From assembly GCA_946965045.2 (NCBI GenBank), contig OX337239.1, forward strand, positions 1,922,001 to 1,986,000: a stretch of 64,000 nt of DNA, read 5' to 3'. Source of the stretch: Epithemia pelagica (Eukaryota; Protista; Bacillariophyta). Below the pieces are notes generated by a model that made no database searches, was not told where the DNA came from, and saw nothing but the letters and a program-made list of their open reading frames with translations. Below, piece after piece: positions 48,717-59,644 of this stretch (position 1 is the first letter of the stretch; each line of letters begins with the position of its first letter). The position numbers and the translations under genes were made by a program.

Positions 48717-48987
48717 ATAAAACACAGTCAGTCGTCCCAGTCCGTCAATCCATCATCAGTTTGTACACCACCAAACGAGAAAAGGAGACCCATGAGTCAA
48801 AGTTGGAGTGAATACTTTCTCCTTGTTTGTCGTAGATAGAAAATGCCAGTTCATTCCGAAGTCTGAACATGGAAGTATTTTAGTCTTGATTTATTTGGTC
48901 CGTGACTGGATTTTCAAGGATATTATCCGCGACCCATCATTATTCGCCACCCACCACCACGGAAAGAACCGACAAAGATACGAGAAC

Positions 48988-51900
48988 ATGAAAGATGCCG
49001 ATCGACCTGTAGGACTAGGACAACGACCAGGAAAAGAAACAGGAAGGACTTTTCGGTCCATGGGGTGGTGTTCGGTAGGAGGGACGTTGTCGTCGTCCTT
49101 GGTCTCTTGTTTGGCATTTCTGAATGGAATTCATGCCTTTGCTCCAATGATGGATGGTCCATGGAGCACCACAATCTCCTCCTCCGATCGACCCCAGCAG
49201 TCACAGTCTCTTGGGGTTCGACCATTCCTACCACGCTCCTCCGATTCGTCGTTCTCGAGTTTGCGTGCAGCATCCAAAGCACCCCCGCACCAAGAAGAAC
49301 CACTACGGTCGCAGCCGTCTTGTTCGACGACAACACCTACTACTACGACGACGACGACACGAAGAAGAACCTGGAGACTCTATGGGATTGAAGTACACCC
49401 TGATGACTTGCAATGGGATCCCCATTCCGAACAACAACGCCGCCGCCGACAACGACCGCCAAACCAACCACCACCACACGACGAACCACCAACACCATCC
49501 AATCCCACTACTACCTCGTTCACTGGTACGCTGCAATCGGAATTGCATCCGTCAATTTTACAAGCCTTGTATCACAAATATCCCCGTTTGGGTGATACGG
49601 ATGCCACACAACCCAACGACAGCGGTTTGGGCATGGCACCACCACAGGAGGAATCTCAACCGAATCGCGACAAGGCTCGTTCGACAAACAACAACAAGAA
49701 GAAGAAGAAGAAGCCAACCAAACACAAGAAACAACAACAAAAATCCACTGCCGTTCTAACAGTTTCCTCCATTCGAGTGGTACGACGATCGCTGGATGCG
49801 CGACGACACAAGCCACGATACGATGGACGAGGCAAGGGACCCCGCTTTGTCTATGTGTTGGATGTCGACCTTGAGTCTGCCACAACAACAACAACAAACT
49901 CCACGACCAGGACCGTAACGTCCTGGGAACAACAAGAACAAGAACCACAACCAGATGAGTCCTTGTTTCTGGGACGCTGGAAACCACAACCAGGCAAACT
50001 GGAACTCCTTTCCTCCAATCCCATGTTGCACAACCAGCCATTGATAGTACAACAACAACCACAAAAAAACAAAGACGAACCGTTCTTGCATCTTCTCCAT
50101 AATGCTTCCTTCCCCAATACCAACGACAGTATTGTCAACAACGATAAGAATATCAGTACCCGGACGGTAATTATAGTCGGTGCCGGACCAGCTGGATTGT
50201 TTTGTGCCTTGGAATTGCTCCATCACAACCAACGTGTCTTGCAAACTACCAACAAAAGGAATAATTCCCAGGAGGACCATTCTTCGCCCAATGACAATCG
50301 TACTATCGTCTTGTTTCAACCCATTGTTCTGGAACGAGGCCAACCGGTGGAACGACGGGGCAAAGACATTGGTGCCATTATGGCACAACGGTATGGACGA
50401 GCGGCAGCCTCCAAGCAAGGGGGCCACACCAGCAACCCGGATCATGCACAAAAAGAAAAAGAAGAAGAAGGCTTCGTGGTATTGAATCCGGATTCTAATT
50501 TTTGTTTTGGAGAAGGTGGTGCGGGCACTTGGAGTGATGGAAAATTAACCACTCGGATTGGACGCAATTCCGACTTGGTCCGACGCGTCTTGCAAACCTT
50601 GGTCCAGTATGGGGCACCATCCATAATCTTGACGGAAGGCGCTCCCCATTTGGGAACCGACAATTTGGTTCACTTGTTGCGAACCTTGCGAAAGTCAATT
50701 GAAACACAGGGTGGACAAGTTTGGTTTGGTCATCAAATGACCAAACTTTTGTTTGCAACGGACGAGGAAACGAACCAGCCAAAAGTCATTGGCGTGGAGT
50801 ATAAGCGCACACAACCACCACCATTGAAAAATCGGATGAAACGTGATACGACGGACGAGAACAAGGTCCAGAAAGACTCGGTCACAAACAATGAGGGTAT
50901 TTTGTATGGAGACGCTATTGTCTTGGCCACGGGTCATTCGGCACGCGATGTCTATCAACTTTTGGCCTCCTCACCGGAAACACCCGTCCCCTTGGAAGCC
51001 AAGGGATTTGCCATGGGCTTTCGCATTGAACATCCCCAAGCCATTATTAATCAACTGCAGTACGGACCCGAATGGGGATTGTCGGTACGGACCGGAAAGA
51101 CTACGACCGACAAGCTCAATCAAGAGCACTTTGAGGCCCTGCCATGGAATACTAAAAACGCGACTAGTGATCAGGACAACCAAAGTACGACATCGCAGCC
51201 ACAGCCACACGAACGACTCCCTGTTCCGTCCTATCGATTGGCGACGGACCAGGCATGGGATGGCAGTCGTCGTCGGGGTGTCTACTCCTTTTGTATGGTA
51301 CGTGACCAAACCACTCGACCAAAAACCCATGGCATTCTTTGGCATGTTCTCATTCTTTAAATCTATTCTTCAAAGTGTCCGGGTGGTCAAATTGTGCCCT
51401 CCTCAACCGATCCAACCGAGCTCTGCGTTAATGGAATGAGTTTTAGTCGTCGTGATTCTCCCTGGGCCAACAGTGCCTTGGTCGTAACGATTGCACCAGA
51501 CGATCCGCTTTTGATACCCTATCAAAAAACACATGGTGTCATGGCCGGTATTGCCTTTCAACAAGATATGGAACGTCGTGCCGCACTCATGGGAACACGC
51601 GTCCACACAACAACCAACAGCAGGGACCGCCATGACGAGGAGGATTTGGATGGCGGCGCCACGGATCCTGCTGTCCGTCGGAGGGGTTGGTTGACTGTGC
51701 CTGTCCAACGTGTCACTGACTTTTTGGAGGGACGCATTTCCGAAACTATCCCCTCTTCGTCGTATCGACTGGGTGTTCAATCCGCTCCGTGTCATGAACT
51801 GTATCCACCGGCCTTAACAACCGCGTTGCGGCATGCCCTCGTCGACTATTTCAATCACACCTTGCCTGGTTTTGTCTGTGACGAGGCCTTGTTGCATGGT

Positions 51901-52152
51901 GTCGAGACCCGAACATCCAGTCCGGTACGGATCGCACGAGATGCCGACACCTTGCAAGCGGTGGATATGCAAGGCTTGTTCCCTGCCGGAGAAGGTGCTG
52001 GATTTGCCGGGGGAATTGTATCAGCGGCGGTGGATGGGCTTTTGGTCGCACGTGCCATTGTGGAGGGCCAACAACCTGCCAGCAGCGACAGGAAGAAAAA
52101 CGAAGAGGACCGTTCCAGGAAACACAAACGTCCCAACGACTTTTACTACTAA
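48988..52152 (+). CDS. FAD-dependent oxidoreductase (uncharacterised FAD-dependent dehydrogenase family); intron 51298-51375; start approximate
   Basis: IIVGAGPAGL, FGEGGAGTWSDGKL, PHLGTD, LATGHSARD, GFRIEHPQ, YSFCM|CPGG, NGMS, ETRTSSPVRI, GEGAGFAGGIVSAAVDG. Confidence 0.9.
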
Positions 52153-52249: not shown

Positions 52250-55200
52250 TCAAATTTTCTGCTGCTGATTGGCCCAAAACTTGTCCCAGTCTTTGACGGT
52301 CCAAGGAAATCCCATGCGGGCATTCGGTTTGATCAAGGGACCCTCGCGTCCCCATGTCCCTGTCACGGGGTCCTTACGACAGGACATGTAGTAGTTGTTC
52401 GTATTATAGGGATTACCCGTACTTGACGTGACACCATGGAACAGGGACCTCGCAATGATTCGAAAGTCCAGCGTCACGCGAGTCTCGTCGGTTTGGTTGT
52501 CAATCGTCCAATGAAGACACAAGCCTCCCGCAAAGCGCTTCATTGTTCCTGTGTTGAAGTAAACAAAGACACATGGTTTAGAAAGCAAAGGACTCTTTCG
52601 AATTGCCTTTGACTGCTGCGATTACCATTTCTGCTATCGATTCATCGCAATCCGACACTTTGTGACGTACCGTACCCTCCCAGAATGGGGTGCCAATCTT
52701 CACTCCCAGGTCGGCTTTCAAGAAAAACGGTCGAAGTATTCTGGTCTGCCGCAATGGTTGTCAACGGGACATAGAAATTGACACAACAAGGGTGATGACC
52801 ATAGGCAATATCACTGTGCGGCCCTATACTAAACTCTTTTGGTTGTATCACGCGCAGACAGGGAAAGGCTTGATAATAAAACACCGTTTCTTGTTCTTCT
52901 TCTTCTTGATCCTTGTCGTCCCGACCACCGTCCTGGACGACATGTGGAATACAAACAGTTCTCACAAATTCATCATACACATGCTGAAACGACTCGTAGT
53001 TTTGTGTAAGATTGTAGAGCAATTGGTCTTTGGAGATCCCATGGTGGTTGCCAGTCTTGTCGGTGGAGGGTACCTTGTGCAGTTGTGACAAGTCAAAGTC
53101 GGGCAAAAGGCCGACACTGGAGAGAAAGGATGTTCGCAAATCCATTGGGCTAGTGTTTGTGTTGCTAGTAGTCACCGGTGGGAGGTGTTTGCAACAAAAA
53201 TCTCGTTCTTGCGCCAAGGCACTGGCCAAAAAGAGATCCACCACACTGTTGTTCGTCGCAAAGAACATGGTTGTCATGGAATGACTGTTTGTTGGAGATC
53301 CAGACTCTTTGTTGGATAAAATGTTTGTCAATGCCTCGCGTCGATTCTTTCGAGCCTTTTCCAAATGAGGTTCCAGGACCATTCGCAATGGCAAGGAAAA
53401 GGGTTGAACGGGGATAAAGGTGGCATGATGGGTCGCATGAGCCATGGCCGTACCCAACCATTCCTTGTTGGTAGTCGATGAGGATGAGGACGTCCCCTTT
53501 GTTTTCGTTTTCATATCGTGCATGGATGGTTGTTCCTCTTGTGGCTCGTTACTGGAATTGGATGTTGGAGCCGCTAACATGTCATCCTTTGCGTCGTTCT
53601 GGAATTGTGTATTGTGAGGAAGGTTGGATATCGGTTCGTTTGAAGAAGCCATTTTCGTTTGGTTGTTATCGTTCAGTTTGTCAACAGTTTGTGGTTCTGG
53701 TTGCTGCTCTTGGTCAAGTTGTTCTTCTTGTTGGACCTCTTGTTGCTCTTGTTGGAGTCGTTGGTGTTCCAGTTGGTAAATCCGGGCCAGTCGGTCCGTG
53801 GTACTGACATGAGGATAGTAGTCAATGCGTTGAAACTGATTTCGTCGAATGGGTTGCGCAAAAAAGGTGGCTTGTTGAGCGGCATCCTGATCGCTGGCAA
53901 AGCCATGCACCACCAAATCAATGCCCTGTTGGTTCATAAAGTCGGACGTGACGACCAGCGGACAGGGACAAATCACGGCATGGACCAGGTCGAGTGCGGC
54001 GACAATGGCACTTCGTTCGTCTTGTGGGACAATGGGTGGTCGTTTGTACCCCGCCGCATCGGCATCGCCCGTCACACCAATAATAACAACCGTGCCCAAG
54101 GCGGAACATTGTTGAATGGCCTTTAAATGACCCAAATGAAACAAATCAAAGACACCGTCCATATAGACGGTCCGATGAGGACGATCGGGAACTCTTGTAG
54201 TTGTCGTTGTTGCACGTGTTGTTGCCGAAGGTTGGAGTGGATGGGAATCCGTGGAATGGACCGTAGTATTCGTGCTGTGTCTGTTGGAATTCAGTGAATT
54301 GGATGAGTGGTTGGGGCGATTGGTAGGCTTGCCCTGCTCTTCCTTCTGGTTGCTGTTCTTGCTGTGATTGGTTTGGTGGTTGGTACTGCAGCCAGACGCA
54401 ATCACCGATCCCCAACTGTTTCCGACACATTCTTTCGGAGAGGAAACGTGTGGTTCTCGGCTGGATGGTGATGCAGCAGCAGAAGTTGGTTCATAGTCTT
54501 GATCTTGATCGTGTTGTAATTGTGCGTGGTGTTGTTGGAGTATGGTGGCTTCCCGTAGCATTTGCTCCGACAAGTATTGCACGAGTTGGTGTCGATTAAA
54601 GTTGGTAAATCGTCGTGCCTGCCGTCGAGTGGGTTGCAGGGGTATATACTGAAACTCTTCAAGGGGTACCTTGACTCCACCCTCCCAGGTACCGGCGGTC
54701 AAGACATGAGGCGGCAAGGGATGGTGTTTGGTGGTGCTCTTGTCAGAATGGGTGGCATTGACAGGCGTTTGTGGTTGGGAAATGGCCGGCAGCAGTCCTT
54801 TGTTTTGGTGTTGTTGTGGTTGTTGGTTTGCTGATTGTTGCTGCTGTTGTGGTTGTTGATGACTGACGACCGTGGTATAATACACGTCAAAACAATCGGT
54901 TCCAAAGGCTCGATGCAACAAGCGGACCGGCATGGCCGGGCCAGGGATTTGGGTGAGAGGTCCCAATTTCAAATCCAGTGCCAGAGGAAACAATTCGTAG
55001 GGTCGATAAATTTCCTTGGGCCACAATTCCATGGCCTTGCGCGTCGAAAAATGCCAAACAGGAAACAACCGTTGTGACGATCTGGTGGTGGTGGTTGTTG
55101 CATGGGGAGACACTGGTTGGTCCGAGACTGGTCGATTGTCGTCATTGTCGTCGTCCTCCTCTTGTTGCTGGTTTGGTTCTCCGAGGAGCGCTCGGGTCAT

Positions 55201-56064
55201 GGTTTGCACCAAGGACTCCACATACGGTTCTGATTGCGGCTGTCCATTGGTTTTGGTGGCCAACACTTCTCCGAGGAGCGCTCGGGTCATGGTTTGCACC
55301 AAGGACTCCACATATGTGTCTGATTGCGGCTGTCCATTGGTTTTGGTGGCCAACACCTGCCGTACATGGTCCCAACCGGTATAGGGTTGAATCACAAACA
55401 AGTCGCAAAAGACGGTATTCACGTGTCGCGGTCGAATCCGATCGCCACCTGGCCATGGTTTGATTTGATACTGATACCGGTCGGGACCCTGTTGCTCATT
55501 CAACACGGCTTGCAAGTGTTGTTGGACGCGGGTATAATAAGAAACGAAGGAGGAAGCATCCGCCTCGTCTTGTTCTTGTTGTTGTGGTGGTCGAGTTTCG
55601 ACAATGGCGAGATCGACATCGTCATCGCAAAACAAAATGGAATGTTGACGAATGGCACCCAACAAGGTCCCTCCCGTGACAATCCACGGAACGTGAAGGG
55701 TCGTCAAGGCTTGTTGGACAGCAGCCACTGTTTCATACAAGGCATCCACTTCGGTTCGACTCAACAAGAGCGGATCCGGACCCATGGACGGTGGGCGACG
55801 TGGACGACGTGGACGACGAGAATGAGAATTGTTGTCGTTCCGGGTGGTTGTTGTCGTCGTTGGGGGGTTTGGTGATATTTCACTTGCATCATCATCCTTT
55901 GATTGGATTGGACAATCCTTCTTCTCTTGATGTTGTTTCTTGTCGTCTGTGGATGCTGATGCAATGGATGGAGGATTCATTTTGTACATGCCATGATAGA
56001 AACCACAAGAACAGGGAGGGATGCCGATGGGGAAGAAAAGATTCAGTCGCACAACATTTGGCAT
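52250..56064 (-). CDS. Fusion protein: LicD-family phosphotransferase + choline/ethanolamine-phosphate cytidylyltransferase-like + StrG-like Fe(II) oxygenase domain (intron 52549-52670); start approximate
   Basis: GGTLLGAIR...DDDVD; YMDGVFDLFHLGHL...STT; PHSDIAYGH...VNFYVPLT...LHWT...TRVTLDFR. Confidence 0.85.
55177..55356 (-). repeat. 90-bp in-frame tandem duplication (30 aa) inside the LicD domain
   Basis: VLATKTNGQPQSDTYVESLVQTMTRALLGE / VLATKTNGQPQSEPYVESLVQTMTRALLGE; 3 nt differences. Confidence 0.95.
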
Positions 56065-56500
56065 CGTGGCACTGCGGATGGAGTCTAAAATGGTTCGTAT
56101 CACCGACGGAAGACATGGGATCTTCCACGTGGAAAGGTATGGCACTGAAGATGGAGGATGGAATGGATCATGGACTTTTTTCAAGGACGAGCACACCGAC
56201 GCACAGACGACGCATTCGTGTCGGTGCGTGTCATCAGAGCAGATGGGGCACCTCTCCTTCTTTCTGCTTCTTTTTTTCGTGTGTCATCTCATCTGGATTC
56301 GTCGGCTCTGACCCAAAACACAACAACACGAGGAAAGGCGCAAGCGCAAGAGTAGATTGAATCGAGGAGAGGACAAGACTTGAGGCGAACGAGACTCTGG
56401 ACGACTCCCACCAAACGCAAGAGGCTTGTGTTCGCGAGTGACGGTGGTGTTCTTTGGAAGTGGACAATCTCGACAACACATTCCAAAATCGATTGATTGA

Positions 56501-59644
<3,144 letters not shown>

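Follow-up and report, generated by a model that had tools for sequence, protein, structure and literature searches.

A predicted three-domain LicD-cytidylyltransferase-oxygenase fusion protein in the diatom Epithemia pelagica and its relatives

LicD, fukutin (FKTN) and FKRP are CDP-alcohol-dependent enzymes. The bacterial LicD enzymes act in the cytosol. FKTN and FKRP reside in the Golgi membrane with a type II topology and possess a stem domain; FKRP is a CDP-ribitol-using transferase. Among the cytidylyltransferases, canonical ECT carries two cytidylyltransferase (CT) domains in tandem and CCT has a membrane-binding helix. Here, we describe a gene that joins a LicD/FKRP-type domain, a CCT/ECT-type CT domain and a predicted PhyH-type Fe(II)/2-oxoglutarate (2OG) oxygenase domain in a single chain. 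The gene is from Epithemia pelagica, a diatom and thus a member of a group that fixes a large share of ocean carbon, and lies on a stretch of 64,000 nucleotides (GenBank assembly GCA_946965045.2, contig OX337239.1, positions 1,922,001 to 1,986,000 of the forward strand). This whole stretch is referred to as the window, and coordinates are window positions unless stated otherwise. The fusion gene occupies 52250..56064 on the minus strand, on which all of its features are read, and was delineated from a list of open reading frames (ORFs), a splice model with its translation and an alignment with 12 orthologues.

The first-pass annotation of the window, which was made from the sequence without database searches, had proposed three domains in this order, with a single intron and intact motifs, and had suggested a search for the same architecture in other genomes. 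The domains, their order, the intron and the motifs are all borne out by the reading frame, the splice model, the domain searches and the fold comparisons described below, and the motifs lie at the places that it had named, with that of the oxygenase at 52.3-52.9 kb. With three domain profiles, the LicD-CT-oxygenase order was found in 123 fetched proteins, and a word-index search returned 100 relatives of 630-1090 residues with 33-45% identity. The 123 proteins include complete transcripts: ORFs marked 'type:complete' that hold the fusion come from the MMETSP/EukProt transcriptomes, for example those of Conticribra, Odontella and Thalassiosira punctigera. The fusion in these relatives is therefore transcribed as a single message; where the annotation had allowed for separate transcripts, those of the orthologues carry the whole fusion. 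This evidence for one transcript comes from orthologues of other species and not from the window gene. All three domains have intact catalytic motifs in the window, and these motifs do not vary among 42 orthologues. The annotation knew of no description of the architecture, and our literature searches, which combined LicD or fukutin with diatoms or were directed at StrG, agree in having returned no relevant paper.

The coding frame is open on the minus strand for 1184 codons, from 56196 to 52642, and residue numbers of the window protein count from the start of this ORF at 56196. There are two options for the start codon: the ATG at 56064, which is the most upstream in frame, and the ATG at 55980, which in the alignment is the better fit to the N-terminus of the closest orthologue (from Epithemia). 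The unspliced frame meets a stop nine codons past ...HPILGGYG, and a GTACGT donor is located exactly at that point; the acceptor AG follows 122 nt downstream of the donor, after a pyrimidine-rich stretch. The sole intron (52549..52670, 122 nt, GTACGT...CAG) is in phase 1 and is followed by a last exon of 99 codons (52548-52250) ending in the stop codon TGA at 52250-52252. The splice junction is gapless when compared with complete transcript-derived orthologues of other species (GGYG/TMKRFAGG in the window versus GNYG-TIKHFAGA). Allelic patterns were taken solely from the four public runs that hold the stretch, all of which are DNA-like contigs. Among these contigs of the same organism, in which two haplotypes or strains are represented, the indels in the coding parts measure 12, 3 and 3 nt and are all in frame, those in the intron measure 2 and 46 nt and an indel of 1 nt lies after the stop. 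Given the ungapped junction, together with the pattern of intron versus in-frame exon indels, the one-intron gene model is sound. Synonymous changes account for 16 of the 35 listed coding differences between alleles or strains; chance would give roughly a quarter, and the observed share is consistent with constraint on the protein.

The two allelic intron deletions are placed at 52603-52650 (46 nt) and 52569 (2 nt). Many single-base differences occur along the gene in the public contigs, pointing to a heterozygous organism or to several strains having been sequenced.

The N-terminal LicD/FKRP-type domain (residues 134-555, 54532..55797) was delimited with a profile of the 42 orthologues and carries a conserved C-terminal extension (LPPxV..GGxWE..HYxPxQP). 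Its nucleotide and metal motif, GGTLLGAIRQHSILFCDDDVD (residues 175-195), is read in the translation at 55612..55674. It contains GGTLLGAIR...DDDVD, and the positions T46-G-G..L-L-G..R55 and D63-D64-D65-x-D67 (profile numbering) are invariant in the 42 orthologues. The window protein matches the Pfam LicD family (PF04991) within this motif only, at 13-17 bits (E of 0.006-0.09) against a cutoff of 22.6. PF04991 is matched at E <= 0.01 by 41 of the 42 orthologue domains (best E 2.2e-9), and several database relatives carry a precomputed PF04991 tag. FKRP is the sole solved structure matched by the domain, whether by profile or by Foldseek. The orthologue profile finds the FKRP catalytic domain with an E of 7.6e-5 and with the GG.LLG..R and DxD motifs aligned, and the top 13 Foldseek matches in the PDB to an AlphaFold model of the domain (pLDDT 84.8) are without exception chains of FKRP, with E values from 2e-5 to 4e-4 and a query TM of about 0.4. 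This model, like that of the oxygenase discussed below, was built on an orthologue domain. The best reading of the domain is a putative transferase that takes the phospho-alcohol of a CDP-alcohol and passes it to an acceptor hydroxyl.

The LicD domain of the window protein also contains a tandem duplication found with Tandem Repeats Finder, in which a 90 bp unit is present in two in-frame copies that are 96% alike (55177..55356). The duplication repeats 30 LicD residues (VLATKTNGQPQS..LLGE), including positions that are invariant among the orthologues, and positions 130-159 of the LicD profile are accordingly matched twice. It is absent from all of the orthologues aligned and was seen in this species alone. 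The public DNA contigs end at both of its borders, as a real repeat would cause. The window protein is about 1200 residues long, compared with about 790 for the compact members of the family with short linkers, because of its low-complexity linkers and this duplication.

The central CT domain (residues 671-813, 53758..54186) was identified by Pfam and by a PDB sequence search. It matches Pfam PF01467 (CTP_transf_like) with an E of 3.7e-13 and 50.3 bits, against a cutoff of 21. The best solved relative is human ECT (3elb; E 5.5e-28), both CT domains of which are matched, and Plasmodium CCT (4zcp) is matched with an E of 2.6e-17. The ECT and CCT domains score 54-65 bits each, HldC 35 bits and TagD 14 bits. 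The HxGH motif, H687-L-G-H690 in the translation (54127..54138), aligns with those of ECT and CCT, and the HxGH residues, the Lys of YKRPP and the STT are present in the window and conserved among the 42 orthologues. The signature RTEGISTT reads YYPHVSTTD in the window and Y-x-G-L-S-T-T-D in the orthologues, so that STT is kept and the Arg-Thr pair is replaced family-wide. In an NCBIfam scan of the domain, the models for heptose-1-phosphate adenylyltransferase and glycerol-3-phosphate cytidylyltransferase, as well as a generic domain model, all remained far below their cutoffs.

Each chain contains a single CT domain, as judged by Pfam and by our own CT profile, and the Pfam search found no further domain after the CT core. 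In the alignment with Plasmodium CCT, the CT domain has Leu in place of the Trp of CPW and Asp in place of the Tyr of DDIPY. As these two positions are those of the choline cage of CCT, phosphocholine appears less likely as the substrate than an ethanolamine-like or polyol-like phosphate. Two canonical identities were rejected. The protein is not a canonical ECT (PCYT2), as it has one CT domain and not two in tandem, and it is not a canonical CCT (PCYT1), as the presumed cage residues Trp and Tyr are replaced and the CCT membrane region was not detected. The automatic database names of the relatives ('ethanolamine-phosphate', 'choline-phosphate' or 'glycerol-3-phosphate cytidylyltransferase') are not justified, given the single CT domain and the missing CCT membrane region.

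The C-terminal oxygenase domain (residues 910-1271 of the spliced product, 52253..53469, with the intron inside) was located by a profile match. Its first two iron ligands, H1127-S-D1129, are read in the translation at 52810..52818. The stretch from the third ligand, H1188, to the 2OG-binding R1199-V-T occupies 52478..52513, with H1188 at 52511-52513 and R1199 at 52478-52480. R1199 is thus 11 residues past H1188, which is also the spacing in human PHYH (H264/R275). The equivalents of these four residues in domain numbering (H172, D174, H231 and R242) are invariant in the 42 orthologues, and S244 is nearly so.

The sequence searches with this domain were empty. Pfam, including PhyH (PF05721), gave zero matches in the 42 orthologue oxygenase domains or in the window pieces; the window pieces found nothing in Pfam, NCBIfam or the PDB sequences except for one match at an E of 0.099; and the oxygenase profile gave chance matches only against the PDB sequences. 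The domain was therefore identified through its fold alone. An AlphaFold model of an orthologue oxygenase domain (pLDDT 95.7) was compared with known structures (Foldseek, VIA). The best match was PtlH (Z 12.4, root-mean-square deviation 3.7 A for 201 residues), followed by EctD (Z 11.4), PHYH (Z 11.0), GriE and proline hydroxylases (Z ~11) and PHD2 (Z 10.4). Of the 75 Foldseek matches at E <= 0.001, those that were listed are Fe/2OG oxygenases. In the model, the domain is a double-stranded beta-helix of the PhyH-type Fe(II)/2OG fold, with a helical N-terminal part of roughly 145 residues.

Among curated families, TIGR04324 ('sporadic carbohydrate cluster 2OG-Fe(II) oxygenase'), whose members belong to surface-carbohydrate clusters of bacteria, comes closest and is matched by 28 of the 42 orthologues (best E 1.4e-5) with scores that all lie far under its curated cutoff of 150 bits. 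As judged by these scores, TIGR04324 is a relative of the oxygenase family and not the same family. An exhaustive profile search gave about 1980 cluster representatives of the oxygenase at E <= 0.001, and at the sequence level the oxygenase is an uncatalogued family. Stand-alone relatives from Symbiodinium, which share 33-38% identity with the diatom domain, bear the NCBI name strG; together with the Fe(II)/2OG oxygenase fold, this gives a basis for the 'StrG-like' label of the first-pass annotation. The same oxygenase family is also found fused to a polyketide-type SAT starter-unit acyltransferase (PF16073) in the haptophyte Prymnesium parvum (P0216) and in two metagenome proteins (P0288 and P0296). 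In the ESM Atlas, giant-virus and phage proteins join a DegT sugar aminotransferase to an oxygenase-like fold (TM 0.53-0.59).

Variants of the architecture indicate which of its parts belong together. About 20 proteins combine LicD and oxygenase domains without a CT domain; many of these have 600-850 residues, with the LicD domain forming the N-terminal half. Among them are transcripts of the diatoms Extubocellulus and Asterionellopsis, and the set includes P0261, P0268, P0271, P0275, P0292, P0293, P0295, P0306, P0368, P0376 and P0382. The last of these carries a precomputed cytochrome b5 tag (PF00173), and about 138 of its N-terminal residues lie outside the LicD and oxygenase profiles. These CT-less paralogues lead us to regard the LicD-oxygenase pair as the core of the protein and the inserted CT domain as its supplier of the donor. 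Phage (Uroviricota) proteins of about 325 residues in the ESM Atlas clusters fuse PF01467 to PF04991, a combination that fits the CDP-alcohol dependence of LicD-family enzymes. Four metagenome proteins (P0244, P0245, P0249 and P0099) carry a dual-specificity phosphatase (PF00782, E 5e-20), inserted where the oxygenase has a variable loop close to its C-terminus. Their architecture is LicD-CT-oxygenase(phosphatase), they group with Symbiodiniaceae in the oxygenase tree and the predicted insertion points to phosphate chemistry.

The gene neighbourhoods of six distant bacterial relatives of the oxygenase (23-28% identical) were also inspected. The Prochlorococcus and SAR11 relatives adjoin genes for GDP-mannose dehydratase, epimerases, a DegT aminotransferase, a glycosyltransferase, a methyltransferase and PhyH paralogues. 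These neighbourhoods yield a general glycan-cluster context only. On one uncultured Pelagibacteraceae contig (L004, contig positions 5105-10594), three PhyH-type oxygenase genes within 5.5 kb are interleaved with those for an epimerase, a glycosyltransferase and a methyltransferase, with an ABC exporter adjacent; the region is, by its predicted gene content, an oxygenase-rich glycan-tailoring island.

No signal peptide or membrane helix was detected in the 13 orthologues examined, in which hydrophobicity peaks in a core strand of the CT domain. On these grounds, a type II topology in the Golgi was rejected. The fusion protein is therefore probably soluble and cytosolic, and luminal action of the Golgi type, as for fukutin and FKRP, appears unlikely.

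Taken together, the three domains suggest a soluble, probably cytosolic enzyme that makes a phospho-alcohol group, installs it and oxidizes the same molecule in three steps, a reading to which we give about even weight and for which we infer each substrate, the order of the steps and the location. In the first step, the HxGH domain would couple CTP with a small phospho-alcohol to give a CDP-alcohol, with an ethanolamine-like or polyol-like phosphate favoured over phosphocholine. In the second, the LicD/FKRP-type domain, with its DxD metal site, would move the phospho-alcohol from the CDP-alcohol to an acceptor hydroxyl and release CMP; the acceptor would most likely be a sugar or a lipid- or protein-linked glycan. 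In the third, the PhyH-type oxygenase would hydroxylate or oxidize the same molecule, targeting either the head group or the acceptor, whose attachment site it might create or tune. The transferase-oxygenase pair would then be the conserved core and the cytidylyltransferase its built-in donor supply. The sequence of activation, modification and transfer put forward in the first-pass annotation remains the most economical reading, strengthened by the CT-less LicD-oxygenase fusions and by the bacterial glycan clusters; the zwitterionic nature of the group and the wall target that it also proposed are conjectural.

Several observations weigh against this three-step enzyme. The window protein itself falls under the Pfam LicD threshold (17 versus 22.6 bits), and the duplication of a conserved LicD segment could impair the transferase. 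The Arg-Thr pair of the CT signature is replaced family-wide, so that CTP is only the putative nucleotide, and, among the bacterial models, the NCBIfam heptose-1-phosphate adenylyltransferase model scores at least as high on the CT domain as the glycerol-3-phosphate cytidylyltransferase model. Finally, no LicD or CT gene was found within 10 kb of the six bacterial oxygenase relatives; given this and their low identity of 23-28%, the link to glycans is indirect.

The oxygenase and the transferase might instead act on protein. Here, the oxygenase would hydroxylate a cytosolic Pro, Lys or Asp and the LicD domain would esterify the new hydroxyl with the phospho-alcohol, a scheme for which the cytosolic Skp1 hydroxylation and glycosylation pathway of protists is the logical analogue. 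It would explain both the inseparable oxygenase-transferase core and the missing secretory signals, and one of the fold matches is to a prolyl hydroxylase, PHD2 (Z 10.4). The best fold matches, however, act on small molecules (PtlH, EctD, GriE and the free-proline hydroxylases), the bacterial oxygenase relatives sit in sugar clusters and we know of no LicD-family enzyme that acts on a protein hydroxyl. We regard protein modification as unlikely.

Phosphonate chemistry, which we consider quite unlikely, would have the CT domain activate 2-aminoethylphosphonate or a relative as its CMP conjugate, the oxygenase hydroxylate it and the LicD domain attach it to a glycan or lipid. PhyH-type oxygenases that act on aminoethylphosphonate (PhnY) and on a CMP-linked phosphonate (FrbJ) lend it some plausibility. 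The PDB sequence search matched the cytidylyltransferase domain of a phosphoenolpyruvate phosphomutase fusion (5x3d) with an E of 3e-6, but this match is far weaker, at 28 bits, than the 55-65 bits for ECT and CCT. No PhnY-type or FrbJ-type structure is found among the best fold matches, and the fusion is not accompanied here by a linked gene for phosphonate synthesis. A diatom ECT-type enzyme, whose gene may not be an orthologue of the fusion, has been proposed to be able to make CMP-AEP (PMC9765203).

It is very improbable that the protein is an ordinary Kennedy-pathway enzyme with regulatory or inactive flanking domains. The database names would agree with such a role, and the CT domain is indeed closest to ECT and CCT. 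Against it, there is a single CT domain and no membrane-binding helix. The catalytic residues of the LicD and oxygenase domains are invariant in the 42 orthologues, which argues that both are active, and it is the CT domain that is dispensable in the paralogues and not the LicD-oxygenase pair. That three neighbouring genes have been read as one, with the gene boundaries hidden in the long low-complexity linkers, is essentially refuted by a continuous frame of 1175 stop-free codons over all three domains, by in-frame coding indels and by the recurrence of the same order in the 123 proteins, among them complete-transcript orthologues of about 790 residues with short linkers, so that separate genes were rejected.

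The distribution of the fusion provides a separate lead. Diatoms that hold the full fusion include both centric and pennate forms (Epithemia, Cylindrotheca, Nitzschia, Thalassiosira, Conticribra, Skeletonema and Odontella). The holders outside the diatoms are the parmalean Triparma verrucosa (P0383), the silica-scaled chrysophyte Paraphysomonas (P0052) and the loricate choanoflagellates Didymoeca costata (P0070) and Stephanoeca diplocostata (P0239). All of the named holders of the full fusion are silica formers; names exist for about a quarter of the matches. In the full-length tree, a single group with weak support, placed beside the Odontella branch, unites the non-diatom sequences with two metagenome sequences, and the tree is compatible with the non-diatom group being the sister of the diatoms if the root is placed on their stem. 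In the tree of the oxygenase alone, stand-alone domains from Symbiodiniaceae fall in the same clade.

The SIT silicon transporters have been reported in diatoms, in loricate choanoflagellates and in siliceous chrysophytes including Paraphysomonas, and not in non-siliceous stramenopiles (PMC5100055). The fusion might likewise belong to a gene set of silica-forming eukaryotes and have moved between lineages as SIT has, its product being a hydroxylated phosphodiester-bearing glycan or small molecule needed for silica structures; we regard this as improbable. The link to silica is only a lead, because no more than about a quarter of the matches are named, the transcriptomes may be contaminated and the lone oxygenase occurs in organisms that do not form silica. 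The fusion-type oxygenase domain is found alone in the non-silicifying Symbiodiniaceae, and model diatoms were not seen by name among the holders. These domains go unmentioned in a 2026 comparative paper on silica genes. The apparent restriction to silica-forming lineages offers a cheap and testable lead on silica.

The fusion is of wider interest in that it packs donor making, transfer and oxidation, as predicted, into one chain and points to an unstudied branch of diatom biochemistry. The databases mislabel it as an ordinary lipid-pathway cytidylyltransferase, and its oxygenase belongs to a large family, with some 2000 cluster representatives, that has no Pfam model. Because all of the proposed steps reside in one protein, the fusion can be expressed and assayed as a unit.

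Two neighbouring genes on the plus strand flank the fusion gene. One, at 48808-52152, encodes an FAD/NAD-binding (GAGPAGLF) oxidoreductase-like protein and runs towards the fusion gene's 3' end, the two stop codons being about 100 bp apart. The other, at 56501-58264, encodes an FtsH-like AAA protease and is divergent from the 5' end.

Compared with described systems, the proposed pathway shares its logic with the bacterial Lic pathway (the cytidylyltransferase LicC and the phosphocholine transferase LicD), in which a CDP-alcohol is made and the phospho-alcohol is moved to a glycan by a LicD-family enzyme in the cytoplasm. The diatom fusion differs from this pathway and from the phage CT-LicD proteins in having the LicD domain first and the CT domain second, in its additional oxygenase and in its eukaryotic host. 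The nucleotidyltransferase fold of LicC differs from the HxGH class, and the choline-cage positions are not conserved in the diatom CT domain. The LicD domain aligns with mammalian FKRP in the GG.LLG..R and DxD motifs; unlike FKTN and FKRP, the diatom protein lacks both a signal peptide and a membrane helix. In the mammalian ribitol-phosphate system, the donor synthase is a separate protein (CRPPA (ISPD) or PCYT2) and there is no oxygenase, whereas both are fused to the transferase in the diatom.

The CT domain shares PF01467 and the HxGH, YK and STT motifs with CCT and ECT (PCYT1 and PCYT2), and differs from them in the replaced Arg-Thr of RTEGISTT, in being single where ECT has two CT domains and in lacking the CCT membrane-binding region. 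The oxygenase domain resembles the PhyH-type dioxygenases in its beta-helix fold (Z 11-12.4) and in its HxD...H ligands followed by an Arg 11 residues on. It differs from them in having no Pfam match, in its helical N-terminal part and in its fusion to LicD. The likeness to StrG of Streptomyces is indirect, by way of the relatives named strG. The parts are therefore known kinds of enzyme; what is new is the three-domain eukaryotic architecture, its LicD-oxygenase core and the uncatalogued oxygenase family.

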